Made by a program: the position numbers and the translations under genes. From Ylistrum balloti (Eukaryota): a stretch of DNA of 64,000 bases. The stretch spans positions 248,001 through 312,000 of the forward strand of contig NW_026781989.1 in assembly GCF_031769215.1 (NCBI RefSeq), given 5' to 3'. Below, one piece after another: positions 11,990 to 51,526 of this stretch; position 1 is the first letter of the stretch, and every line of letters starts with the position of its first letter. The notes under the pieces were generated by a model. That model saw only the letters and a program-made list of their open reading frames with translations. It did not search any database and was not told where the DNA came from.

Positions 11990-13100
11990 GGTGATATCAC
12001 TCTAATAAAACGATATCGTCTATTCATAATAGTGATATCACGTATTCATTACAGTAATATCACCTATTCATTACAGTTTCATCACCTATTCATTACAGTT
12101 TGATCACCTATTCATTACAGTTTGATCACCTATTCACTACAGTAATATCACCTATTCATTACAGTAATATCACCTATTCACTACAGCGATATCGCCTATT
12201 CATTATAGTGATATCGCCTATTCATTACAGCGATATCGCCTATTCATTATAGTGATATCACCTATTCATTACAGCGATATCGCTTATTCATTATAGTGAT
12301 ATCGTCTATTCATCATAGTGATATCGCCTATTCATTACAGCGATATCGCTTATTCATTATAGTGATACCGTCTATTCATCATAGTGATATCACCTATTCA
12401 TTACAGCGATATCACCTATTCATTACAGTGATATCACCTATTCACTACAGTGATATCACCTATTCATTATAGTGATATCGCCTATATCACCTATTCACTA
12501 CAGCGATATCGCCTACTCATTACAGCGATATCGCCTACTCATTATAGTGATATCGCCTATTCATTACAGCGATATCGCCTATTCATTACAGCGATATCGC
12601 CTATTCATTATAGTGATATCACCTATTCATTACAGCGATATCGCTTATTCATTATAGTGATATCGTCTATTCATCATAGTGATATCGCCTATTCATTACA
12701 GCGATATCGCTTATTCATTATAGTGATACCGTCTATTCATCATAGTGATATCACCTATTCATTACAGCGATATCACCTATTCACTACAGTGATATCACCT
12801 ATTCACTACAGTGATATCACCTATTCACTACAGTGATATCACCTATTCATTATAGTGATATCACCTATATCAACTATTCACTACAGCGATATCGCCTACT
12901 CATTACAGCGATATCGCCTACTCATTATAGTGATATCGCCTATTCATTATAGTGACATCACCTATTCATTATAGTGACATCAGCTATTCATTACAGTGAT
13001 ATCGCATGATAAATAGGTGGATTCACTATAATGAATAGTGCTACCATCATTTAAAATAAATAGGTAACATCACCATAATGAATTAGTGATATCGCCAAAA
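11990..13100. repeat. 22-bp minisatellite (consensus tcacctattcattacagtgata) with an internal 10-bp palindrome; degenerate inverted units at 13020-13100
   Basis: Roughly 45 tandem units containing GCGATATCGC/GTGATATCAC. The right flank contains cactataatgaatag, the reverse complement of the unit. Confidence 0.95.
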
Positions 13101-24752: not shown

Positions 24753-27700
24753 ATGAAAGTTCAACTGGATATCAAGATGGAGGACAACGAATTAGAGGAT
24801 CTATTGAAAGAAAGACTCAATTTAAACAATATAGCATTTGTTGAGAATAGAAATGGATATATTAGCGAAGGAAAGGTGTTTCAAACGGAAGATGGAAGCA
24901 GAATCTTTGTCAAGGTAAACCGGAAGCAAGGGGTAAGTATATATTATGTAGTCCTTTCAATCTGTTCATATAGTGTTAGCAATGGTTTACAACTGACAAG
25001 TGTTCGACCATAGCGGATTTTATTAATATATTGTTTCATAGTTACACAACTGCACTTTGCGCACCTTTAAACATCATTCCAACGTCAATCTTCAAGCAGT
25101 GATTGAATAATACTTTACTCCATCATCTTGACCTGTTAATAAAAGCACTGATCAATATGATTGTAGGACTTTAGTTTGATGGTAATGCTGACCGAAATCA
25201 AATATCCACAAGGCTGGGAAGCCCAGGGATAACGGTGGATCCCAAACGCTCTGATCACTTTTCTTCTACCTGCAGAATCTTTGATTGGTTTGTACATCTA
25301 CCGTTTATCAAGGTCTAGAAAGGACGTATTTGGAGATAAAATACAGCAGTGAACGTTGGGTTTTTTTAAGCAATGAATGGATAAAAAAGTAACTCCCTTT
25401 GCATATACTTAAACAGATGTTTACAAATCCACTGGGCTTATTGAGTAAATAACCGTCGATTAGAGATATGGTCACCAAAGGTTTATAGTAACTGGTCTGT
25501 TGTTACCTGTTCCTGAAGTGATTTAAGTCACAAGGTCAATAACCTCATTCGGTTATTGATATGGTACAGGTCCGTTTGTAGTAAATGGTTTGCTAGAGAA
25601 CTTTCTAAAGTAACTGATTGGCAAGGATACTGTCCATAGTAACTGATTCGGTAAAGAACATTTGTGGTCACAGACTTTCTAAGAACCAGCGGTAACTGAT
25701 TTTGTAGAGAGAAATCTTTAATAACCGCTTTGGTAGGGAGCCTTCTATAGTAAATATTTACGTAGAAAGTGTTATGTGTTAAGTAATTTGATAGAGAGCA
25801 TCTTTAGAGAACATTTGTAGTAAGTACTGAGGTATATGATATGGTAGAGAGACTTCTGTGGTAACTGATCTGGTAGAAAACCTGTATTACATAATCTGCT
25901 AGAGGACCTCCTGTGTTAGGTAACCTGGTAGAGAACCTCCTGTGTTTGGTAGGCTGGTAGAGAGCCTCCTGTGTTAGGTAGGCTGGTAGTGAACCTCCTG
26001 TGTTAGGTAGGCTGGTAGAGAGCCTCCTGTGTTAGGTAGGCTGGTAGAGAGCCTCCTGTGTTGGGTAGGCTGGTAGAGAGCCTCTTGTGTTGGGTAGGCT
26101 GGTAGCGAGCCTCTTGTGTTAGGAAAGGCTGGTAAAGAACCTCCTGTGTAAGGCAACATGGTAGAGAACCTCCTGTGTTAGGTAACCTGGTAGAGAACAT
26201 CCTGTGTTAGGCAACCTGGTAGAGAACCTCCTGTGTTAGGCAACCTGGTAGAGAACCTCCTTGTGTTAGGTAGGCTGGTAGAGAACATCCTGTGTTAGGT
26301 AGGCTGGCAGAGAACCTCCAGTATTAGGTAGGCTGGTAGAGAGCCTCTTGTGTTAGGTAGGCTGGTAGAGAACCTCCTGTGTTAGGCTACCTGGTAGAGA
26401 GCCTCTTGTGTTAGGTAGGCTGGTAGAGAGCCTCCTGTGTTAGGTAGGCTGGTAGAGAGCCTCCTGTGTTAGGTAGGCTGGTAGAGAGCCTCCTGTGTTA
26501 GGTAGGCTGGTAGAGAGCCTCTTGTGTTGAACCTCCTGGTAGGCTGGTAGAGAGCCTCTTGTGTTAGGAAAGGCTGGTAAAGAACCTCCTGTGTACGGCA
26601 ACATGGTAGAGAACCTCCTGTGTTAGGTAACCTGGTAGAGAACATCCTGTGTTAGGCAACCTGGTAGAGAACCTCCTGTGTTAGGCAACCTGGTAGAGAA
26701 CCTCCTGTGTTAGGCAACCTGGTAGAGAACCTCCTTGTGTTAGGTAGGCTGGTAGAGAACCTCCTGTGTTATGTAGGCTGGCAGAGAACCTCCTGTGTTA
26801 GGTAGGCTTGCAGAGAACCTCCAGTATTAGGTAGGCTGGTAGAGAGCCTCTTGTGTTAGGTAGGCTGGTAGAGAACCTCCTGTGTTAGGCTACCTGGTAG
26901 AGAGCCTCTTGTGCTAGGTAGGCTGGTAGAGAGCCTCCTGTGTTAGGTAGGCTGGTAGAGAGCCTCTTGTGTTGGGTAGGCTGGTAGTGAGCCTCTTGTG
27001 TTAGGAAAGGCTGGTAAAGAACCTCCTGTGTAAGGCAACATGGTAGAGAACCTCCTGTGTTAGGTAACCTGGTAGAGAGCATCCTGTGTTAGGCAACCTG
27101 GTAGAGAACCTCCTGTGTTAGGCAACCTGGTAGAGAACCTCCTGTGTTAGGCAACCTGGTAGAGAACCTCCTGTGTTGTACCTGGTAGAGAACCTCCTGT
27201 GTTAGGCTGGCAGAGAACCTGCTGGTAGAGGGCCTCCTGTGTTAGGTAGGCTGGTAGAGAGCCTCCTGTGTTAGGTAGGCTGGTAGAGAGCCTCCTGTGT
27301 TAGGTAGGCTGGTAGAGAGCCTCCTGTGTTAGGTAGGCTGGTAGAGAGCCTCCTGTGTTAGGTAGGCTGGTAGAGAGCCTCCTGTGTTAGGTAAGCCTCC
27401 TGTGTTAGGTAGGCTGGTAGAGAGCCTCCTGTGTTAGGCAGGCTGGTAGAGAGCCTCCTGTGTTAGGTAGGCTGGTAGAGAGCCTCCTGTGTTAGGTAGG
27501 CTGGTAGAGAACCTCCTGTAGCAAATTACTTGACAAAGAATCTTCTGTATTAAATGATTGGACAAAAACAAAAATCTGTTGTAAGTGATTTCGTAGAGAA
27601 ACTGCTAGCTGATTTGATAGGGAATCATCTGTGGTAGAGAACTTACCGTAATAATTGCCTATGTAAAGAACATTCTGTAGTAACAGATTTGGTCTGTGGT

Positions 27701-30700
27701 TACTGATATGATAGAGAATAGTCTTTGATAACAATTTGGCGGAGAACATTCCTTTTATAACTGATTTGATAAAGAACCTTCTCTGTCAACTGATTTGCTA
27801 GAGAATCGTCTGTAATAACTGAGTTGGTAGGGATCTTTCTGTAGTAACTTACTTGATAGAGAACCCATTAATTGGAATACATTTCATTTCAGGCACGACT
27901 AATGTTCGAAGGAGAAGTTGCTAGTTTGGAAGCACTGAAAAACACAAATGAAATTCGAGTGCCGAACCCAATTAAAGTAAATACATTCACACAAAAACAC
28001 AAATCCTTTATTTCTCACTGAAGTCTGTTACCGGTGAAAACTGGCAGTTGCTATGTATATGATATTATTTACCGTTGCGCTGCTACTGTGTAGTCTTAAG
28101 AAAGCAGTGTTTATTGCTGGATCTTGAAATACATAACTGCAGGTAATGTAAACCAATTTATATAATAGTGAATTATATTGAAAATGATAATGTAAGCATC
28201 AAATTGCTTTCCTTGAGCATTCCTGGACATCATAAGTGTTAACTGGAAACCGCAAATTCAGTATTCAGCATTTATCCATTTGGCATTCGCACATTCAAAA
28301 ATATATTACTATGTTTTGTAAAACAATCAATTACCCCTTTTCTAATTATGATTTTTTTCTTGTCAGATCATGAACATTCCGACTGGAGGTTCTGCACTAG
28401 TTATGGAGTTTCTTGACATCACTGAGCTTTCGAACCAGCAGGCAGCTCTTGGAGAGAAATTAGCACGGTAAGGTTCCTATGTACTGGGAACGGTACATTT
28501 TGCCAATAAAGATTGACAACACACAAGCTGTTCTCAGTGAATTGTAAAAGATCAAAGAAATACTAGACAAATCGTTCGTATGATATGTACGTGACATCTG
28601 TCTAAAAGAACTCACATAAGTTTTCACGTGATATACTATTGTTATCTGAAAGTTTGTAAAGTTTTTTATTCATTTATTTGTTGATGCCATTATAAACGAT
28701 GCGAAACAAATGAGTAATTGAGACAGGATAATTATATGAATGATGAATCATATTTAACACACCATGGACGTGTATTTAATACACTCATCTCATTCTATTT
28801 AAAAAAAACCAGTCATATTATGTGATATCCCTAAAATATTACTATCGACACTGAGAGCAAATATATTGATCTTTTCTTGCGCGGTGCCTTAATGATCAAC
28901 TTAAATTTCTGATGTCTTAGGTATTCACTCTGTACATAATATTTTTACCACAAAACAAATACGTGAATGATCATTTTTCATAACAAAATGTCGTCCAATA
29001 CTGGGTTGTAATTAATATCATGTAACTCCAAGACGATAATGAATATTGAAATATTTCAAATTTCCCATTATCAACATTTTGTAAGAAACATCTCACTTAT
29101 GCGTAAATCAGACGTTGAATGTTAAAGGATCATTTCTAATCCGCGCGAGCTAGCTTATGATTTTACTGTAATGATTTTGATTTTTCGGGATAGACAAGTT
29201 TCATAAATCTCAAATAAAATCGACACAAATTAAACATAGAGACCATTCCACACTTAGAATGAAAAAAATTGATAGTTTAAATGTCGATATAGTTACAAGT
29301 CGAAACAACAAAATGTATACATCTGTGCTGATTTTGTGATAGAATAGCCAGTCACAAGTGGGATTGAAGTTGTGTCTATCAAACTATTACTTCACATGTG
29401 TTACAATCATAATACTTTCAAGTGGAAAATTTTGTAATATTATTATAACTTCTGAATCACAATCAAATTATTGATCTGTAGGTTACACCTGCACAATGAC
29501 AGATTACGACGTCGGGCCAAGGCAACCGAATGTACAGTAGGGGAATACGAACGAAGTCCGATAGCCGTAGAGAAGTTTGGATTCGACATGGCAACCTGTG
29601 TCGGCTTTCTGCCTCAACCTGTTTCTTGGTCGGAAAACTGGACGGTAAAACATGATAACAGATTTATCTTTTTGTATACAATTAGTATTTATTTTTCAGA
29701 CCATCCAAACCTAACGAGAAGTTGCCAATACATTTAAGACACTTCAAGATGAATTAACTTATCAACGTAAGCGTAACAAAACCTGAAGCTCAATCAATTT
29801 ATCGTATTTAAAGCTTCATTGATATGACAATTGTCCTTAAACTTCTGAAGACAAAAAGATCTTACGATGTTATGTAGTTTCCTCTGATATAACAAGTTAA
29901 GAAAAGAAACGAATTCTCGTAACAACGTAGCAAATGCCCTATTTTGAAGACAGCTTCATCATCATGAGAACAATTAGAATATGAGCATATGTATCTGCTA
30001 AAGCGGTATTATATGTATGTATCGGTTTTATCTGCCACTGATCAAAATTGATTGTACATTAATCAACATCCCGGTTGATATAATAAGCTGATATATCTGT
30101 AACATTCCTTGCTGCTTCGAATTTAGAAAGAAGATCTTGGAAGAATGTGGATATTGCTACTCCCGATGTAGATTTCTTTCGATCACTGACGAAACCTAGA
30201 AGGACCGAAAAGCTGTATGATAGAGTGTGATTCACTACGTGTATTTTGATCTATTTTATTCAATTCTTAATATGTTTTCAAAGGTGATCTTCATTTTTCC
30301 GTGTATTGTACAATTTTCCTTTGACCATATACAATGTTTAAATTTTTGTTAGCTCGAAAGTCAATACGGTAGTTGAAGAAAGTAAATCAAAATTGCATTC
30401 ATTATATCTACCCTTGATTACATAAAGATAGATGTAGTAACGAACCAGTGCGAAGTGATTAAATAGGTCAGACAACGCTATGAAGTAATTGAAAAACGTG
30501 CATCCTTATTTCTATATACAGTGAGATATCGCTTAAAATCCGGTTCATAATTGAGACCACCTCGCTTTTACGACTATTTAATTTCAACCCTAAAACATGT
30601 ATATGTCTTTGTATCGTTAGCTTATCAGTTAAGATCACTGCACTATTTAGAGCATCTTAGACCAATTTTGGGTGTAATCAGAGCATTAACCAGTCATAAA

Positions 30701-33700
30701 TTCTCCCATAAGTTACATACTACGTATTCTACTGTCAAATTTACAACTCGGTCAATATTACATAATGTTTAATGCTATAAAACTAACATACCGATTTTCG
30801 TGAATGTGGAAAATATGGACAAAATTTGTCGAAAGGGAAGTCTATTTGGTCATACTCATTCTTGAGACCACCTCGCTATTAAGACCAACTTTTGTACGAT
30901 CCCAAATGTGGTCTTAATAGCAAGGATTCACAATATTCATTTACATATATTTCCTACACTCGTTTAGCTAACCATTGTATTATAAAATCTTTGTTCCAGA
31001 CCTACTTTTCCAATTTACTGGACTATCGGATTGGATTAATTGAAAAGCAAGCTTCATCGCCTGTTGATACAGTAAGCTCAATGATTTGAAATATTATATT
31101 CATTTTAATAAAAGATTTATATGAAATACATCTGTAATTCAATTGTTTTCAATTTTGTAGATACTCTTCTGAGCATAGAGTAATTAGTAAAATAGAGAGA
31201 AAATTGTGGAAGTTTAATTTTGGAACTGATACATCTCTACATACAGATTTATTTATCCTTTGTTTTCTTGTTATTGATATTATGTACTCTCGATCGCCTC
31301 CTTGGTTTCAAAGTTTAGGACTTTTATATCACTGACGAGACAGAAAAAGGAAACAGCTATATGATACAGCGTTTGATCAACAATGTGTTTCTGCTGTATC
31401 TGATTCTAAGTATTGAAAAAGATTATCAACTTTCATGTTTTTGTACAACCATTGTAAAGTCCGATATAGGTACATATAACGTAGTATTAGTATGGCTCCT
31501 TTTGTGTATAATATTAGATAATTCTTAACTTCCATACGCTAGCTGCTGATACCTCTTTATTGATACATGTATTGGACCCTGAAAATTAATACAACTAACT
31601 GTTATTACATGATCACCAATTTAACTACCACTGCAACACAATATAATGACATATCTAAATCATTGCAGCTACAATATAGAATATTGAACATTTTTCTGGT
31701 TGCTTCCCTTATATCACGCAAGTTTTCTACATGTTCTTATGGTAATAAATGTAGTTTATTTTAGCGATGAACAATACATGTAAGTCAGTTATTATATAAA
31801 AACGTTTCCGTAACATATATCTTTACATAACCGTAAATCGCTTTTTATTACTTACGTCAACATTGCGTCTTCTGAAACTATATGATATGGCCGCTAACAG
31901 ATGCTGTAACCCTGCAATAAAATGCCTTAGAAAAAATGACTTTCTTCAGAAGGCTTACCCAAGTTAACATTTGTTAAACAAATAGATGTTTGCATTCAAA
32001 ATATCATGTTACGGGTGACTGAAGACAGAAAATTCCATCTGTTTCGTTACGCTGTAACTGCATCAGATAGGGACATGTAGACTTTTTCTATTCATCCCAC
32101 AGAGTTTCTGCTGACGTGTTAAGCACTTTATTAGTAGTTGTTTCATAAGGGTATTTTTATTTGGCTAGTTTTGGTTCCTGTTGGTAAACTAGCTTACTTT
32201 GTATTGATTAGGAGTATTCTTTTCCTTTTCCAGGTAAATGCACACAAAATGCGCGAACTATGGACAGAGATTCTGCTTCTTTTGCCCGGACACTTTCGGA
32301 ATATCGACATCAAACCTTCTTTACTACATGGTGACCTCCATGTTTTCAACTCTGGGGAAACCAAACATGATGGACCAGGTTAGTCTGACTTTGAAGCAGA
32401 TAAGATACATTTTACAAACACAAGATACTGGCAATACCCGCGTATAATCACGGGACATAATTCCGGTCTTAATGCTATTTGTTGATTTGTTTGTTGTGGT
32501 TTTATGTCGCTCAAACTAAGGTCAAATGTGAACTATAACCTCAGGACGATGAAGCAATGCCGTGTACGCCTCTGATTAGAATCGAAAAAGATATTTGCTT
32601 ACATGACTACTAAACAACCATGTAATTGAATCTTCTCGCTAAGTGATAGGTAAAGACCTATATGCCAGTAACTTCTGAATGACACAGTTGAGTGACCTCA
32701 AAACATCTCGTGGTGAGGCAACACATATATCCAACTGAATAAGTAACTCGCTTTATTGCTCGCTTCATTATGGAAATGCAACAGACAATGTTTAAGTGGT
32801 GAAAAGCTATGAAATTATAATATATATTATAAAAAATGTTTTTTAAACTTGGTATTAGTAACATTTGTATATCTTTTCATTATAACGCTTTAAACTGAAT
32901 ATCTATAAAATTCACGTTAACATCTTACATCACAACTGGATCAAATTTACAAAAAATAATAATAATAAACATCGTGTGTCACAGGCTAAAACCTGATCAC
33001 ATTTCAGAATAAGATTATGTATTACAGACTGCAAACTCATCAAACTCAGGATAAAACCGTGTATTACAGACTGCAAACTGCTAAAGTATTATTAAATTTC
33101 AGAATAACATTATGTATTGCAGACTGCAAACTGACCATACTCAAGATAACATCATGTATTACAGACTGGAAACTTATCAAATTCAGAATAACATCGTGTA
33201 TTACAGATTGAAAACTGAACAAATTTAAAAAATCACGTGTTCTAGTCAAAACATTGATCAAATACTCTACAATATCGTATATTTGACATTAAATCTGCTT
33301 TCAGTAATATTCGATCCAGCTTCCTTTTATGGTCATTCAGAGATTGATCTTTCCGTGGGATTTGTTTATCCTGGATTCAACCAGCAGTTCTATGATGCTT
33401 ACTTTAAGTTAATACCCAAGGCACCCGGATTTGAAGGCAGACTGGACCTCTATATGTTAAATCAGATATTGAACTATTGGTATGTACAAAATATCTACAA
33501 TTATTAGTATTTTTTAATCTTAATACGGATCTACCAGTGATATTTTTATCAGTTACCTGTTACCTGCACTGTTTTAGGCTAAATAACGATTTTCATACAC
33601 GTTTAATTTTACATATTCTTGTATCTATTTAGTTTTAATATATCATGTAAATCAGTCTTAAAGGTTTGAAATATTGGTTTTAAAATCATTTTATGATACT

Positions 33701-33877
33701 TCAATAATAGTAATGAAATCAGCATCGTTTTCGTTATCTTTTAAGACTGACGTCATATTTAATACATGTATTATGTATCTGTGTTATATGTCTTGTAGGA
33801 ATCATTTCGGTCCTAAACAGTGCCGCCAACGAACTATTGATTTGATGAAGAAAATTACAGACACTAAACCACAATGA
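24753..33877 (+). CDS. Diverged fructosamine-3-kinase-like paralogue, 8 coding exons, 332 aa
   Basis: Exons 24753-24932, 27893-27976, 28367-28467, 29482-29644, 31000-31071, 32234-32378, 33305-33479, 33799-33877 (999 nt, open, GT-AG). Phases are identical to the upstream gene, and exons 2, 3 and 7 have identical lengths (84, 101, 175). Motifs: [59 protein letters not shown]. Confidence 0.9.
25600..27865. repeat. 29-bp minisatellite (ggtaggctggtagagagcctcctgtgtta / ggcaacctggtagagaacctcctgtgtta) with degenerate flanks, in intron 1 of the FN3K paralogue
   Basis: Homogeneous core at ~25900-27520. Degenerate gtaactgatttg(g/a)tagagaa units on both sides. A ~440-bp super-repeat marker aggaaaggctggtaaagaac sits at 26121, 26566 and 27003. 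Confidence 0.97.
32965..33230. repeat. Degenerate ~41-bp tandem repeat (about 6 copies)
   Basis: Recurring tcagaataacatcgtgtattacagactgcaaact motif in intron 6 of the paralogue. Confidence 0.8.
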
Positions 33878-46712: not shown

Positions 46713-49700
46713 TTTAGTTTAAACAATATTTTATTCAATGTTTAACATTTAGATATACATATAATTCAAATCTTAACTAAGAGGATTTGGTAACAAGCTT
46801 AAAGCTTATGTAAAACCATCTCCTAAAATGTTATACCATTCACATATCGACAGAGTGGTCCAACTAAAAAGGAATGCTGGTGGCAGCTATAAAATTACAA
46901 TCCGAGTACTGATCATGTGTTTGAAATGTAGTCGCGTGCAAATTAGATATGAGTTGTTTTTAATTCCCTATATTACCTCTGAACTGAAGAGTGCAGAGAG
47001 TATAGAATATTATAAGATATAACATAACATTTGGTATAATTAAGCATAGATACATAGTAAGTACAATAATAAAGTATATAGGTACATAATAAGATAGTTG
47101 TACATGCACATGGAGAAACCGACCTTATAATGTGGGAAGCATAATGATAAATTGGTATTAATACATTTGAGTAAGTAAAATATTGTGCAAGATATGCACT
47201 GTAATGATAATTTTGTAGGCCCACAGCACACAGGGGTTGGGGATACCCCTACCAGCAAGGTGTTGCAGGCTCTCAATTTTTTCACAAAAAATATAAATAC
47301 ATTATGCCATGCACATATATCATCATTTTAAAGCCCAATTGATGCATGCATTGGGTATAGTCATATTTGCAATTTGTAAGAATATAAGTGTAGTACACTA
47401 TACAACATCATTATGCAATATAATGATAAGTTTGTAGGCTCACAGCACACAGGGGTTGGGGATAGCCCTACCAGCAAGGTGTTGCAGGCCCACAATTTTC
47501 ACAAAAGATGTAAATACATTATGCCATGCACATATATCATAATTTAAAGCCTAGTTGACGCATACATTGGTTATAGTAATATTTGCCATTTGTAAGAATG
47601 TAAATATGGTACAATATGGCGACATAGCAATCATAAAAAATAATAGGTACAGTATTTGTAGTGAAGGTAAATCATTATAAGTATATAATATGTCCATACT
47701 AAGGGCAAGTATATTATATTAACTAGGGACTAAATTTCATATTACTGATACATGTAAGTACTTTGCGGATACCGTTAAAGTACGTATATGTTACGTTGGT
47801 AAATAATGCGTGAATGGATATCTACATTCAACTAAAGGCAAATATAGTATTTCTACGCAGTTTAGAGCGAGTATGGGTAAGTAATTTATGATTAAATTGG
47901 TAAGAGGTACAAGATTTGCAATGAAAGTACATCGTGACCAAGTGATTGAGAACGAGATTGTTGTTAGAGTAAGCACAGTCAAGTTATTTTTACAAATGGA
48001 AATGGATACGATCATGCAAATCGTTCACTTTTCATTATATATTCTTGAACAGCTGATACGATTTCCTCGTTTTGCTGTATAGTTAAATCGGGATTTCCCC
48101 AGAGTAGACATTCAGTATTTAAATCATAATTGAGTGCCCAAATGTATTGTTCTCTTATGTTTGTGTATTTTTCACAAGCAAATAAATAATGAAAGTTGTC
48201 TTCAATATAACCGCATGTACAAAAAGGATCGTCGCTAATGTTTTTCTCAAAGAGGTGTGCTTTTAAGCTGCTACATAGTAGTCTAAGTCTCGAATGGTAT
48301 ATTTGGGCTGTTCTGTTTCCATAGGATCGGTAACTAGGCGATTTACCTTTGTCTCTATAAAGATAATGTTTAAGGACAGACACAGAGGGGTTTTCTCGTA
48401 TAGTGGTAGGTAGATTGTTCCACAAATGGACAGTAGAAGGAAGGAAGGAGTTTTTGTAGAAACTGGTATTAGTTTTAATGGTAGATAAATGATTCGATTG
48501 TCTAGTTCTCATATTATGTATTTCGGAATTTCTCCGTGGAAGTATATTAGAAAGAGAAGACGGAGTATGGTTATAGACCATGTTGTGGAGCTTGATAATC
48601 TTATGTTTTTTCCTGCGTTCTGCTAATGTGTCCCAACATGTATCTTTATATAACAATTCTATACTTACCAATTTTGTTGCTCCAGTAACAATCCGTGCTG
48701 ATTCCTTGTGAATAGATTCTAGTTTATTAATAAAGACAATTGGCAAAGAATCCCAAACAACATCAGCATATTCAAGGATCGGCAAAATATATGAGAAATA
48801 TATACGTTCTAACGTGCTACGGTCAAGAACAAATTTGAGCTTCCTTAGGGCAGATAACCTTTTGGACGCCTTCAAGATAATACCGTCAACATGATTAGTC
48901 CAACTTAAATCTTCATTGATATATACACCTAGATGTTTGTGTGTTATTACTTGATTGATATTTGTGTTATCCATACTAAGTTGTGGAAGGATAGATTTTG
49001 AAGATTTCCTACTGATTAGTAACGACTCTGTTTTATTTGCATTAAACGTAACTAGCCATTGATTAGCCCAAGCATGAATATTACATAAGTCATTATTTAA
49101 TACGTTGGCTGAGTTAATAGCGTTGTCTACTACGAGATAGAGGGTAGTGTCATCTGCAAATAATTTTATAATACTAGCAATGTCAGAAACTATATCATTG
49201 ATAAAAATCAGAAACAATAAGGGTCCTAAAATAGAGCCCTGTGGAACCCCAGCTTTAATTGTACCATAGTTTGAAAATTCACCGTTTACCAAAACTCGCT
49301 GTTTCCTATCAGAAAGATAACTTTTGAACCACCCTAATAGCGTTCCCCTTATGCCTGCTTTATTTAATTTATAAAGGAGTCCCTTATGCCACACCCTATC
49401 AAAAGCTTTACTTATATCTAGGAAAATAACCTGCACCTCCTTCCCACAATCTAAAGCTTTACCAATATCATTTGTAATAGTCAATAGTTGATTTATAGCA
49501 GAATCACCTCTTCTAAAACCCGACTGGTGTTCGGTGAAAAAAGAAGAGTCTCGTAGAAAATTATACACATGTTTAAAAACACACCTTTCCATAACCTTTC
49601 CTATTATACTAATAAGGGAAATCGGTCTATAATTTGAAACTACACTAGGGTCGTCTTTTTTAAATATAGGAATAACATTAGCCATTTTCCACATTTCGGG

Positions 49701-51526
49701 ATATGATTGATTCGACAGTGATTTGTTAAAAAGACTACAAAGAGGCCCAATTAACTGACGTTTACCTTCTTTTAAAAATTTCCCACTTATTAAGTCAGGC
49801 CCAGGTGCTTTAGACGCGTCAAGTATACTAATAGCATCAGAGACGTCCTGCTGTGTAATAGTAATATTTTCTAGTATGATAGTAATATTGTCATGATTAA
49901 CTGGAAGGGGTCGATGTAAGTCGTTAAGTTCGGTCTGTTGAATAAAGTAGTCATTAAGAATAGTGGCTTTTTCTTTATCATCAATGTACTCTTGACCATT
50001 ATAAATGATCATAGGTACGTCAGTAGTTTTACATGAAAAGTTAGTTAATGAGTTCAAGACTTTCCACCAATTTTTAGAAGAGTTAGGAGTGGTTTGAAGG
50101 TAAGATGATATTTTTTTGTAATAATTACTTTTCGCCTGCCGAATAGCATCAACACATGTATTTCTTACTTTTCTGAATGTTTCCCAATGAAGTGGGTTCT
50201 GTGTAGTCTTGGCTTTTGCATGAATTCTTTTTCTAGTTCTGATCAATTTACGTATATTATTGTGCATCCAAGGCGGGTCAGCTTTTCTTATTGTGATACA
50301 TTTGTTTGGTATTGTCTCTGAAGCTATTTGAGTAATTGTTTTTGTAACATAATCTGCATCGAGATCTGTAGATAATGCTTCTGTATCATTCCAGGTAATG
50401 TTATTTAATTTCTCACGATAATTGTTAAAATTGCAATCTTTGTATAACCATATACGACGTTTGGTGCATTTACAGTTCGGTGGGCGTTTGAATTTCAGAT
50501 ACGCATATATAGGACAGTGATACCTTATATTACTTTTCAGAAAAGGATCACCTACATGGGATTGTTCAACAATACCATCATTGCTAACGAGAAACACATC
50601 TATTAAGGATCTTGAGGTTTCTGTGAAATGTGTTGGCTCATTTATTAACTGCTTTAAAGCGAATTGGTTCATAATATCTTTAATTACACTGTTATACGTG
50701 GATAGAATATTGTCATTCAAATCACCAGTAATAAGAATGTTTGTAATACCTGTACTAAATGCAAGTTCTATAGAGTAATGGATTAAATTCCAAGTTTGGT
50801 CGTTGATGTTTGGGGGGCGGTAAAAAGTGCCAAGTAGCAGTTTATGAGATTTCAAATGTAATTCTAGCCATACACTTTCAACATTCCTGACCTCGAGATC
50901 TTTACGCCGTTTGACAATGATGTTTTTCCGAACATAGACACCGCCACCAATTCGCGTTTGTCTGCTTTGACAAAAAGGTGGATAAAAATGGCCGTGAATG
51001 AGATCATCAGACGACTCGTTTGAGGGGTTTAGCCATGTTTCGGTAAACGCAAGCACGTCAAAAGTATTCAGTTCAGTAAAAATACATTGATTTTATCTAC
51101 GTTATAGTGAACAACACATAGTTGGACCTGGATTGCTTTCTACAACAATTGAACAAGAAGATCATATAAGACTACAAGAATGTCTAATAGTAAAATGAAA
51201 GTAAGTAAGACATACCAATTCTGACTTACTTTATGTGGATGTACCTTTTTAGGACCTCTAGTGATTACACCTATACCGTATAGGAAGATACAAGTGATAA
51301 TGGGTAAGGCTTTCCATCCAAAGTTAAGTACCAGGTTTACTGCCAGTACAGTAATTGGATCTAAGCGTTTGTGTAAGGGTAATGTTAGGGATTTGTCATA
51401 GAAGGCGCCGGTAAGAGTTCGGTGGCTTATTACGTCACTCGGCATCAGGTAATACCAGATACGTAGGAGAGGTAAGTACTTTTAAACACAGCGCCTTCTA
51501 CGCTTGAGAGTTCAAATATAATTTTC
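46713..51526 (-). mobile_element. CR1/L2-group LINE: APE-RT ORF, ~1.3-kb 3'UTR, candidate 12-bp TSD
   Basis: The 1014-codon ORF is at 48012-51056. The 3' end aataaaatattgtttaaactaaa is at ~46713-46735. AGATGAATAATG is present at 46701-46712 and 51527-51538. A broken upstream part of the same ORF begins at ATG 51445. Confidence 0.9.
48012..51056 (-). CDS. LINE ORF2 (apurinic endonuclease plus reverse transcriptase), N-terminus disrupted
   Basis: APE motifs AFTETWL, GGGV, GTFYRPP, ITGDLN, SLIDVF and YHCPI; RT motifs KAPGPD, YRPISL, FLDISKAFDRVWH, GVPQGSILGPLLF and FADD; C-terminal CTCGYIEDNFHYLFAC. The ORF opens on a GTG just after upstream frameshifts. Confidence 0.95.
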   Translation of the reverse strand: MLAFTETWLNPSNESSDDLIHGHFYPPFCQSRQTRIGGGVYVRKNIIVKRRKDLEVRNVESVWLELHLKSHKLLLGTFYRPPNINDQTWNLIHYSIELAFSTGITNILITGDLNDNILSTYNSVIKDIMNQFALKQLINEPTHFTETSRSLIDVFLVSNDGIVEQSHVGDPFLKSNIRYHCPIYAYLKFKRPPNCKCTKRRIWLYKDCNFNNYREKLNNITWNDTEALSTDLDADYVTKTITQIASETIPNKCITIRKADPPWMHNNIRKLIRTRKRIHAKAKTTQNPLHWETFRKVRNTCVDAIRQAKSNYYKKISSYLQTTPNSSKNWWKVLNSLTNFSCKTTDVPMIIYNGQEYIDDKEKATILNDYFIQQTELNDLHRPLPVNHDNITIILENITITQQDVSDAISILDASKAPGPDLISGKFLKEGKRQLIGPLCSLFNKSLSNQSYPEMWKMANVIPIFKKDDPSVVSNYRPISLISIIGKVMERCVFKHVYNFLRDSSFFTEHQSGFRRGDSAINQLLTITNDIGKALDCGKEVQVIFLDISKAFDRVWHKGLLYKLNKAGIRGTLLGWFKSYLSDRKQRVLVNGEFSNYGTIKAGVPQGSILGPLLFLIFINDIVSDIASIIKLFADDTTLYLVVDNAINSANVLNNDLCNIHAWANQWLVTFNANKTESLLISRKSSKSILPQLSMDNTNINQVITHKHLGVYINEDLSWTNHVDGIILKASKRLSALRKLKFVLDRSTLERIYFSYILPILEYADVVWDSLPIVFINKLESIHKESARIVTGATKLVSIELLYKDTCWDTLAERRKKHKIIKLHNMVYNHTPSSLSNILPRRNSEIHNMRTRQSNHLSTIKTNTSFYKNSFLPSTVHLWNNLPTTIRENPSVSVLKHYLYRDKGKSPSYRSYGNRTAQIYHSRLRLLCSSLKAHLFEKNISDDPFCTCGYIEDNFHYLFACEKYTNIREQYIWALNYDLNTECLLWGNPDLTIQQNEEIVSAVQEYIMKSERFA

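Follow-up and report, generated by a model that had tools for sequence, protein, structure and literature searches.

FN3K is, to our knowledge, the only known enzymatic route that removes early glycation adducts from intracellular proteins, and it is pursued as a drug target through the deglycation of NRF2. Vertebrate FN3K acts on fructosamines and ribulosamines and FN3KRP on ribulosamines and erythrulosamines only, and the two genes are chromosomal neighbours.

In structures of human FN3K, the substrate site is lined by W219, F252, H288 and Y296; W219 serves as a gamma-phosphate sensor and is described as unique to FN3Ks, the carbons of the sugar rest on the Cys151-Gly152 turn, the ketosamine nitrogen is hydrogen-bonded by H288, whose replacement by Phe (H288F) strongly lowers activity, and the DMF site is lined by Y296 and F292 (PMC11754801). 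Mutants of the human enzyme are dead (D217N, W219F) or hyperactive (W219H), the latter keeping its specificity for glycated protein (PMC11754801). The P-loop cysteine C24 gives HsFN3K and AtFN3K redox sensitivity and disulfide dimerisation, and bacterial FN3Ks without it show activity and do not respond to redox agents (bioRxiv 10.1101/2020.01.13.904870). Our literature searches found no studies of FN3K in scallops or other bivalves.

Gene structure and protein family

The window, that is, the whole stretch of 64,000 nucleotides of Ylistrum balloti DNA that we analyzed, contains two FN3K genes in tandem, both on the + strand, to which all coordinates below refer. The upstream gene (15545..21588) is a canonical FN3K/ketosamine-3-kinase of 309 aa in 8 exons (15545-15703, 15914-15997, 16395-16495, 17248-17401, 17564-17614, 18717-18858, 20427-20601 and 21525-21588), with GT-AG at every intron; its product shows every canonical motif and matches P0270, 'ketosamine-3-kinase-like [Ylistrum balloti]', residue for residue. 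The divergent gene lies 3.2 kb downstream (24753..33877) and likewise has 8 exons (24753-24932, 27893-27976, 28367-28467, 29482-29644, 31000-31071, 32234-32378, 33305-33479 and 33799-33877) with GT-AG at every intron, an intact reading frame of 999 spliced nucleotides with no internal stops, and a TGA stop at 33875-33877. Its 332-aa product is identical to P0152 (XP_060064718.1), and the gene is already annotated, as "fructosamine-3-kinase-like". The two proteins share 44% identity, and their genes share the exon start phases 0,0,0,2,0,0,1,2 and the lengths of three internal exons (84, 101 and 175). The spliced model and its identity with RefSeq thus bear out what the earlier note had proposed from the letters of the DNA, an open gene of 332 codons with the 8-exon phase pattern of its neighbour.

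Exon 5 of the divergent copy (31000..31071) has 72 nt where that of the canonical gene has 51 nt, which results in a 7-residue insertion. An alternative candidate for this exon at 31964-32014, of 51 nt, with AG/GT borders and weak similarity, was rejected because the Pecten orthologue places exon 5 at 31000-31071. For the same reason, an A>T change at 31976 in contigs of another individual, which could be read as a null allele, is an intronic SNP and not a nonsense mutation.

Both proteins belong to Pfam family PF03881, with scores of 191.1 bits for the divergent copy (residues 34-319; cutoff 22.4) and 232.2 bits for its neighbour, while an NCBIfam profile search gave no matches. The AlphaFold2 model of the divergent protein (pLDDT 95.7, pTM 0.92) confidently predicts an FN3K-type bilobal kinase-like fold. 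It superimposes on human FN3K 9cxo_A with a TM score of 0.95 and an rmsd of 2.0 A; the top-ranking PDB structures are FN3Ks without exception (9cxo_A, 8ue1 with TM 0.91, 6oid, 3jr1 and 3f7w), whereas APH-type kinases reach only 0.5-0.65.

Active-site comparison

Residue positions are given in human FN3K numbering, mapped by alignment, unless a position in the scallop protein is stated. Besides the family and the fold, the divergent copy has K41, E55, D217, N222 and D234 in common with human FN3K (PDB 9cx8, 9cxm, 9cxo and 8ue1), and the full set K41, E55, H215-G216-D217, N222 and D234-P235-A236 is kept in all four pectinid orthologues. Lys54 of the scallop protein (24912..24914) corresponds to K41, the ATP phosphate-binding Lys of FVK (PMC11754801). 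The catalytic loop HGDLHVFN (32327..32350) keeps His232, Gly233, Asp234, which is the catalytic base D217 of the human enzyme, and Asn239 (N222), and Asp252 of the DPA motif (D234) is kept in the segment 33313..33372; N222 and D234 are the ligands of Mg. The P-loop residues G23, I25 and G28 are also retained, as are D217, G152 and N287 on the substrate side together with H291 and F292. The kinase chemistry is therefore as intact as the earlier note had read it, with the Lys of IFVK, the Glu of MFEGE, the HGD motif, the Mg-binding Asn and the Asp of DPA all in place.

Compared with human FN3K, to which it is about 42-45% identical, the divergent copy carries, in addition to the 7-residue insertion, the replacements C24Y, C151V, N158V, W219H, G221F, F252Y, G253P, F283N, H288Y and Y296Q. 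Tyr36 (codon TAT, 24858..24860) stands at the position of C24, where GGGC has become RNGY, and Val162 and Val169 replace C151 and N158 in the aligned segment 29600..29623. Within HGDLHVFN, W219, S/G220 and G221 have become His236, Val237 and Phe238, and in the VYPGF segment (33313..33372) F252 and G253 have become Tyr270 and Pro271. The NQILNY segment (33460..33477) replaces F283 by Asn301, N284 by Gln302, Y285 by Ile303 and H288 by Tyr306 and keeps N287; in HFGPKQ (33803..33820), Y296 has become Gln314 next to the retained H291 and F292. Every motif change quoted in the earlier note is found in the translated gene model, and its pocket numbering (W219, F252 and H288) agrees with the human structures (PMC11754801); C24Y and the exon-5 insertion come in addition to the changes it listed.

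The replaced positions are 95-100% invariant among 177 canonical animal sequences. In the 173 non-pectinid animal FN3K and FN3KRP sequences, the human residue is found at N158, H288 and Y296 in all 173, at C151, G221 and F252 in 172, at W219 and G253 in 171, and at position 24 a Cys occurs in 167, which confirms on this sample that the motifs are nearly invariant, as had been claimed. Across the four pectinid orthologues the new states are themselves largely conserved, in line with the expectation of the earlier note: His at 219, an aromatic residue at 221 (Phe or Tyr), Val at 151, Tyr at 288 and Gln at 296 occur in 4/4, Tyr at 252 and Pro at 253 in 3/4 each, and position 24 holds Tyr or Leu. 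Canonical animals show 95% or more conservation at 82 columns, of which the four orthologues all retain 64 and all differ at 15; C24, C151, W219, G221, G253, F283, H288 and Y296 are among these 15. By a crude test, the changed sites are not significantly enriched in the ligand-contact segments (8/15 versus 21/67, Fisher p=0.14).

Phylogenetic distribution

Orthologues of the divergent gene, intact and with canonical splice sites, are present in Pecten maximus, Mizuhopecten yessoensis and Argopecten irradians in addition to Y. balloti. In all four genera the canonical gene precedes the divergent one on the same strand, with gaps of 3.2, 20.6, 12.3 and 3.7 kb, and exon lengths are kept by paralogue (163/72/145 in the divergent copies versus 154-160/51/142 in the canonical ones); exon 5 in particular measures 72 nt in all four divergent orthologues and 51 nt in all canonical copies. 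The divergent copy was not found outside Pectinidae in a library of 1.84 billion proteins or by a word search: in the former, the divergent clade forms one cluster among 883 significant representatives, and in the latter only four 90% clusters reached at least 70% identity, the other listed matches lying at or below 47%. The proposal of a lineage-specific paralogue thus stands in the form of orthologues in four pectinid genera, although its range is that of the scallops (Pectinidae) and not of bivalves generally.

In the tree, the scallop pair falls inside the mollusc clade. The stem branch of the divergent clade measures 0.95-1.25 substitutions per site and the branches within the clade are short, a pattern consistent with rapid early change and later constraint. 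Our first tree placed Lottia as sister of the divergent clade (97/94), and the shared C24Y, W219H and F252Y could be taken to indicate an old mollusc-wide paralogue; when Patella was added, Lottia grouped with the canonical Patella gene (98/98), so that its changes are convergent and not orthologous, and we rejected the first placement as long-branch attraction or convergence. With Patella included, the divergent clade lies in a mollusc polytomy. An AU test of the topology in which divergent and canonical pectinid copies form one clade was borderline (p=0.044) on a data set that contained the Lottia artefact.

Evolutionary constraint and transcription

Purifying selection acts on the divergent gene as strongly as on the canonical one: NG86 gives dN/dS values of 0.09-0.14, and the maximum-likelihood omega is 0.142 versus 0.143 for the canonical gene. 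These values are approximate because dS between genera, at 1.1-2.0, approaches saturation; between the two paralogues dS is saturated (pS ~0.9). The Y. balloti locus turned up in a single sequencing run, of DNA and not of RNA, from a second individual, which shows one SNP, a synonymous one, in 634 exonic nucleotides against 33 in 3867 intronic nucleotides. Full-length spliced mRNA contigs of the Argopecten orthologue occur in four RNA runs (SRR19746222, SRR19746223, SRR19746226 and SRR19746227). The three signs of decay named beforehand, namely a dN/dS near 1, a lack of expression and disablements in relatives, therefore have their opposites here: dN/dS far below 1, correctly spliced transcripts, and the same intact exon structure in four pectinid genera.

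Functional interpretation

Since the residues of phosphate transfer are kept and most of those that hold the substrate are replaced, the divergent protein probably remains an active kinase but acts on a different target. We consider it probable, on the basis of sequence, that the gene, so far found only in scallops, arose when the canonical ketosamine-3-kinase gene was duplicated in tandem and encodes a functional small-molecule kinase of the FN3K family with a predicted preference for a different acceptor; its product is most likely a catalytically active kinase with a changed choice of acceptor and with no redox cysteine in the P-loop. Such an enzyme would bind ATP-Mg and transfer phosphate to a hydroxyl group of a small acceptor positioned next to Asp234, with the His at the W219 position contacting the gamma-phosphate, a substitution that raises turnover in the human enzyme. 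As the P-loop cysteine is absent, it would be expected, unlike canonical FN3Ks, to be free of gating by disulfides and redox state. Its acceptor pocket would have been re-lined and then fixed: H288Y would abolish the imidazole contact to the ketosamine nitrogen, and the remainder would be altered by Y296Q, F252Y, G253P, F283N, G221F/Y, C151V and N158V. Given this re-lining, a preferred acceptor other than protein-bound fructose- or ribulose-lysine is expected, the likeliest being another sugar-derived adduct or a polyol-like metabolite. More tentatively, the paralogue may have left glycation repair altogether. It would then be a new small-molecule kinase whose catalytic centre is constitutively 'on' (H219, no redox cysteine) and whose acceptor is not a ketosamine but a compound abundant in scallops or peculiar to them; osmolytes, metabolites of the opine type, derivatives of free sugars and algal compounds taken up with the diet are candidates.

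Other readings of the locus fare differently against these data. That the gene is a decaying or neutrally drifting duplicate, open by chance in this assembly, could be argued from its mere 44% identity to its neighbour and its long stem branch, but the intact relatives, the omega of 0.14, equal to that of the canonical gene, the depleted and synonymous exonic polymorphism and the spliced transcripts refute it. It is highly improbable that the protein is a pseudokinase that has lost catalysis and serves in binding or scaffolding: the glycine-rich loop is indeed degenerate (GGGC to RNGY or RNGL) and the FN3K-specific Trp is lost, yet K41, E55, H215, G216, D217, N222, D234, P235 and A236 are kept in four genera across a dS above 1, the P-loop retains G23, I25 and G28, and a His at 219 raises the activity of human FN3K.

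The least improbable alternative, though we regard it as rather unlikely, is a subfunctionalised ketosamine kinase that still phosphorylates Amadori/ketosamine adducts at O3 and differs only in kinetics, in its preferred ketosamine, in the use of free versus protein-bound substrate, or in the tissue or stage of expression. Its kinetic version would be an enzyme made hyperactive in nature by H219 and lacking the redox cysteine, and its preference version would resemble the division between vertebrate FN3K and FN3KRP. The sugar-side contacts D217, G152 and N287 are kept, bacterial enzymes show activity without a P-loop Cys and independently of redox conditions, and a ketosamine could still be the substrate, in that Tyr at 288 retains a hydrogen-bonding group that could bond an amine and human W219H, though hyperactive, stays specific for glycated protein. 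Against it, at least eight positions around the acceptor, invariant elsewhere, have been replaced and then fixed. Among them are N158, which is invariant, C151, on which the sugar rests, and H288, whose change to Phe severely impairs human FN3K. The vertebrate paralogues FN3K and FN3KRP have different substrate ranges although both keep all of these residues. The neofunctionalisation proposed in the earlier note is accordingly retained in part: the clustered pocket changes are held under constraint and without frameshifts, although W219H alone leaves the specificity of the human enzyme unchanged (PMC11754801).

The FN3K acceptor site is almost frozen across animals, and the scallop clade represents a natural experiment in which it was rebuilt and then fixed, held across a synonymous divergence of more than one substitution per site with the chemistry residues untouched. 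The scallop copy combines a natural W219H, the loss of the redox cysteine and the loss of the amine-sensing His288; once characterised, it would show the range of FN3K specificity and allow the roles of W219, H288 and C24 to be probed in a natural background, and a new activity, in metabolite repair or as a small-molecule kinase, might come to light. Should the copy turn out to differ from the repair enzyme in kinetics alone, its interest would be modest.

Similar replacements in other lineages

The vertebrate FN3K/FN3KRP pair likewise arose by a duplication into two retained paralogues, independent of that in scallops, but both vertebrate proteins kept all pocket residues, most of which the scallop divergent copy replaced. 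Homologues from Thermobifida fusca (3f7w) and Lactobacillus plantarum resemble the scallop copy in having a residue other than Cys at position 24; bacterial homologues share only about 21% identity with it, and in the representative-library sequences that were examined, part of which are probably bacterial, W219 and pocket residues of the H288 type are mostly retained, unlike in the scallop copy. The His219 of the engineered human W219H 'super-kinase' is natural in scallops, and it also occurs naturally in the FN3K of Lottia gigantea (LOTGIDRAFT_121864, P0213), together with C24Y and F252Y, and in a ketosamine-3-kinase-like protein of Conger conger (P0217), both of which, unlike the scallop copy, keep H288, Y296, C151 and N158.

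A tandem pair of FN3K-family genes

The window, AT-rich animal DNA without assembly gaps, carries a tandem pair of FN3K-family genes, both on the + strand: a canonical gene of 8 exons and 309 aa upstream (15545-21588) and a divergent gene of 8 exons and 332 aa (24753-33877). A tblastn search of the whole 64 kb with either protein found no third copy. Every intron of both genes is GT-AG, neither contains an internal stop, and the proteins are 44% identical. The 8-exon phase pattern that the earlier note described as common to both genes was confirmed (phases 0,0,0,2,0,0,1,2 in each), as was, by the spliced model, the length of the divergent protein; the internal exons of 84, 101 and 175 nt are also equal in length. 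Residue for residue, the two models match the Ylistrum balloti RefSeq proteins 'ketosamine-3-kinase-like' (P0270) and 'fructosamine-3-kinase-like' (P0152, XP_060064718.1), the divergent gene being already annotated automatically under this generic name.

Three minisatellite arrays, all large, occur in this region: a 22/44-nt unit upstream of the canonical gene (12012-13005), a 41-nt unit (~29 copies) in its intron 6 (19139-20335), which makes a spurious 400-aa ORF, and a 29-nt unit (~45 copies, GC 48%) in intron 1 of the divergent gene (25896-27519). At 48012-51056 (-), an intact ORF of 1014 aa encodes an endonuclease/exonuclease/phosphatase domain and, after it, a reverse transcriptase (Pfam PF03372 and PF00078); it is the ORF2 of a non-LTR (LINE-type) retrotransposon and apparently undamaged.

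Catalytic and pocket residues of the divergent copy

Human FN3K numbering was transferred via a primate orthologue in which the motifs fall at the published positions. The motifs that the earlier note quoted for the divergent gene are all present. The divergent copy retains K41, E55, H215, G216, D217, L218, N222 and D234-P-A, together with G152, N287, W289 and F292, and carries the replacements C24Y, C151V, N158V, W219H, S/G220V, G221F, F252Y, G253P, F283N, N284Q, Y285I, H288Y and Y296Q. The replaced residues, claimed to be nearly invariant across FN3K/FN3KRP, are indeed 95-100% invariant in 173 other animal sequences (H288, Y296 and N158 in 173/173 each; W219 in 171/173). A conservation of at least 95% across 177 canonical animal sequences is reached by 82 alignment columns; 64 of these are kept by every one of the four divergent orthologues and 15 are replaced in every one, namely G18, C24, G36, V76, C151, N158, F167, D186, W219, G221, I248, G253, F283, H288 and Y296.

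The assignment of W219, F252 and H288 to the ketosamine pocket agrees with human FN3K structures, in which the site for the amine part of DMF is lined by W219, F252, H288, F292 and Y296 (PMC11754801). There, H288 hydrogen-bonds the ketosamine nitrogen (H288F is strongly impaired), and the Cys151-Gly152 turn forms a platform under the sugar. On the sugar, D217 binds O3' and O4' (the D217N mutant is inactive), with N284 and N287 in contact with O4' and O5'. Contacts to the gamma-phosphate come from W219, after a flip (the W219F mutant is inactive), and from the Cys24 backbone (PMC11754801). A crude test found no significant enrichment of changed sites in ligand-contact segments (p=0.14). As read from the alignment, the informative pattern is the split inside these segments: residues of phosphoryl transfer are untouched and those on the acceptor side replaced.

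W219H arose independently in the FN3K homologues P0213 (Lottia gigantea LOTGIDRAFT_121864), P0066 and P0217 (Conger conger). The Lottia protein combines C24Y, W219H and F252Y, and the eel paralogue W219H and G221N; this recurring co-occurrence suggests that the positions are functionally coupled.

Orthologues and origin of the duplicate

With exon 7 as query, an exhaustive profile-free search of 1.84 billion cluster representatives returned 883 significant matches to FN3K relatives, and a single one of these, P0001 of Pecten maximus, belongs to the divergent type (84% identity; all others at most 64%). In a word search with P0001, the divergent type occurred, among the matches listed, only in four scallop genera (Pecten maximus, Mizuhopecten yessoensis, Argopecten irradians and Ylistrum balloti; 70-76% identical), and all other FN3Ks among those matches reached at most 47%. 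Orthologues in other bivalves, which the earlier note had proposed to seek, are thus present in Pecten, Mizuhopecten and Argopecten, and the type is absent from all other molluscs sampled. The canonical gene is the immediate upstream neighbour in each of the four species, on the same strand and at a distance of 3.2 kb in Ylistrum, 20.6 kb in Pecten, 12.3 kb in Mizuhopecten and 3.7 kb in Argopecten, with no called gene in between where visible. Exact spliced alignment of the proteins to their own loci gave exons of about 160, 84, 101, 163, 72, 145, 175 and 76-79 nt for the four divergent orthologues, and of 159, 84, 101, 154-160, 51, 142, 175 and 64 nt for the canonical ones, except that the Mizuhopecten canonical model has its last exon split (60+4 nt). 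In Pecten maximus, a predicted gene for 422 aa (L003:74-1342), without a Pfam match, lies ~8.7 kb upstream of the canonical FN3K.

In maximum likelihood trees (LG+C20+F+G4), the divergent proteins form one clade (support 100/100) nested in the mollusc group, its stem being very long at 0.95-1.25 substitutions per site versus 0.27-0.45 for the canonical pectinid stem. A sister relation of Lottia to this clade was lost once Patella was added, the Lottia protein grouping with the canonical Patella gene, so its C24Y, W219H and F252Y are convergent. Because the two genes sit in tandem and no other sampled mollusc has the divergent type, we favour an origin by duplication on the scallop stem, with a burst of change that later gave way to constraint. 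A pectinid-specific duplication was borderline in the AU test (p=0.044), and the divergent copy may instead have an older origin with later losses.

Expression and selective constraint

The divergent gene is expressed (as its Argopecten orthologue), constrained and equipped with a complete catalytic apparatus on a predicted FN3K fold. The complete, uninterrupted Argopecten ORF with UTRs is found in four Logan contigs (source runs SRR19746222, SRR19746223, SRR19746226 and SRR19746227), one of which matches the locus in eight blocks corresponding to the eight exons, and hence represents a correctly spliced mRNA. Pairwise Nei-Gojobori dN/dS is 0.09-0.14 in the divergent clade and 0.11-0.12 in the canonical one; dS is 0.7-2.0. 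The ML omega (GY+F3X4) is 0.142 versus 0.143. The orthologues are intact, with the same exon lengths in the four genera. The three signs of decay named beforehand, namely absent expression, a dN/dS close to 1 and disabled copies in relatives, are therefore all contradicted, and a decaying duplicate is unlikely. Between 29400 and 33900, the window and a second Y. balloti individual (DNA run) disagree at 34 positions, a single one of them exonic (634 exonic nt) and synonymous. Contigs from this individual also have joints of the 'opposite strands' kind, at 31471/31697 and 31536/31674, in intron 5 of the divergent gene (31471-31697); candidate explanations are an inverted repeat, a small inversion polymorphism and an assembly hairpin.

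Predicted fold and function

The AlphaFold2 model of the divergent protein (66-sequence alignment) has a pLDDT of 95.7 and a pTM of 0.92, and Foldseek places it closest to human FN3K (9cxo_A, TM 0.95, rmsd 2.0 A; 8ue1, TM 0.91), followed by plant and bacterial FN3Ks, with aminoglycoside, macrolide and choline kinases well below; Pfam assigns PF03881 (191 bits). By homology and predicted fold the protein belongs to the FN3K family; judged by the defining features W219, H288, the aromatic lining and C24, it is not a canonical ketosamine-3-kinase.

In its own numbering, the divergent protein would bind ATP-Mg through K54/E68, N239 and D252 and use Asp234 as the catalytic base, with gamma-phosphate sensing passing from W219 of human FN3K to His236; a pseudokinase is unlikely. 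Cys24 of human FN3K mediates disulfide dimerisation and redox sensitivity, and bacterial homologues with a non-Cys residue there are active and redox-insensitive (bioRxiv 10.1101/2020.01.13.904870). Since the divergent clade has Tyr or Leu at this P-loop position, the inhibitory disulfide dimer should not form. The acceptor pocket would have lost the amine-reading His and the Cys under the sugar, and gained two Tyr hydroxyls, a Gln, an Asn and a bulky aromatic in the catalytic loop.

The observation of a divergent FN3K copy is solid, and its reading as a kinase of changed specificity is plausible: given the rebuilt pocket, altered acceptor specificity is probably to be expected. The main rival, to which we give a minor share of the probability, is a subfunctionalised ketosamine kinase; the human W219H mutant is a 'super-kinase', several-fold hyperactive and still specific for glycated protein (PMC11754801). 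A full-text literature search for FN3K with scallops or bivalves found nothing. The closest analogy to the scallop pair is vertebrate FN3K/FN3KRP, in which, unlike in the scallop divergent copy, the pocket stayed intact.
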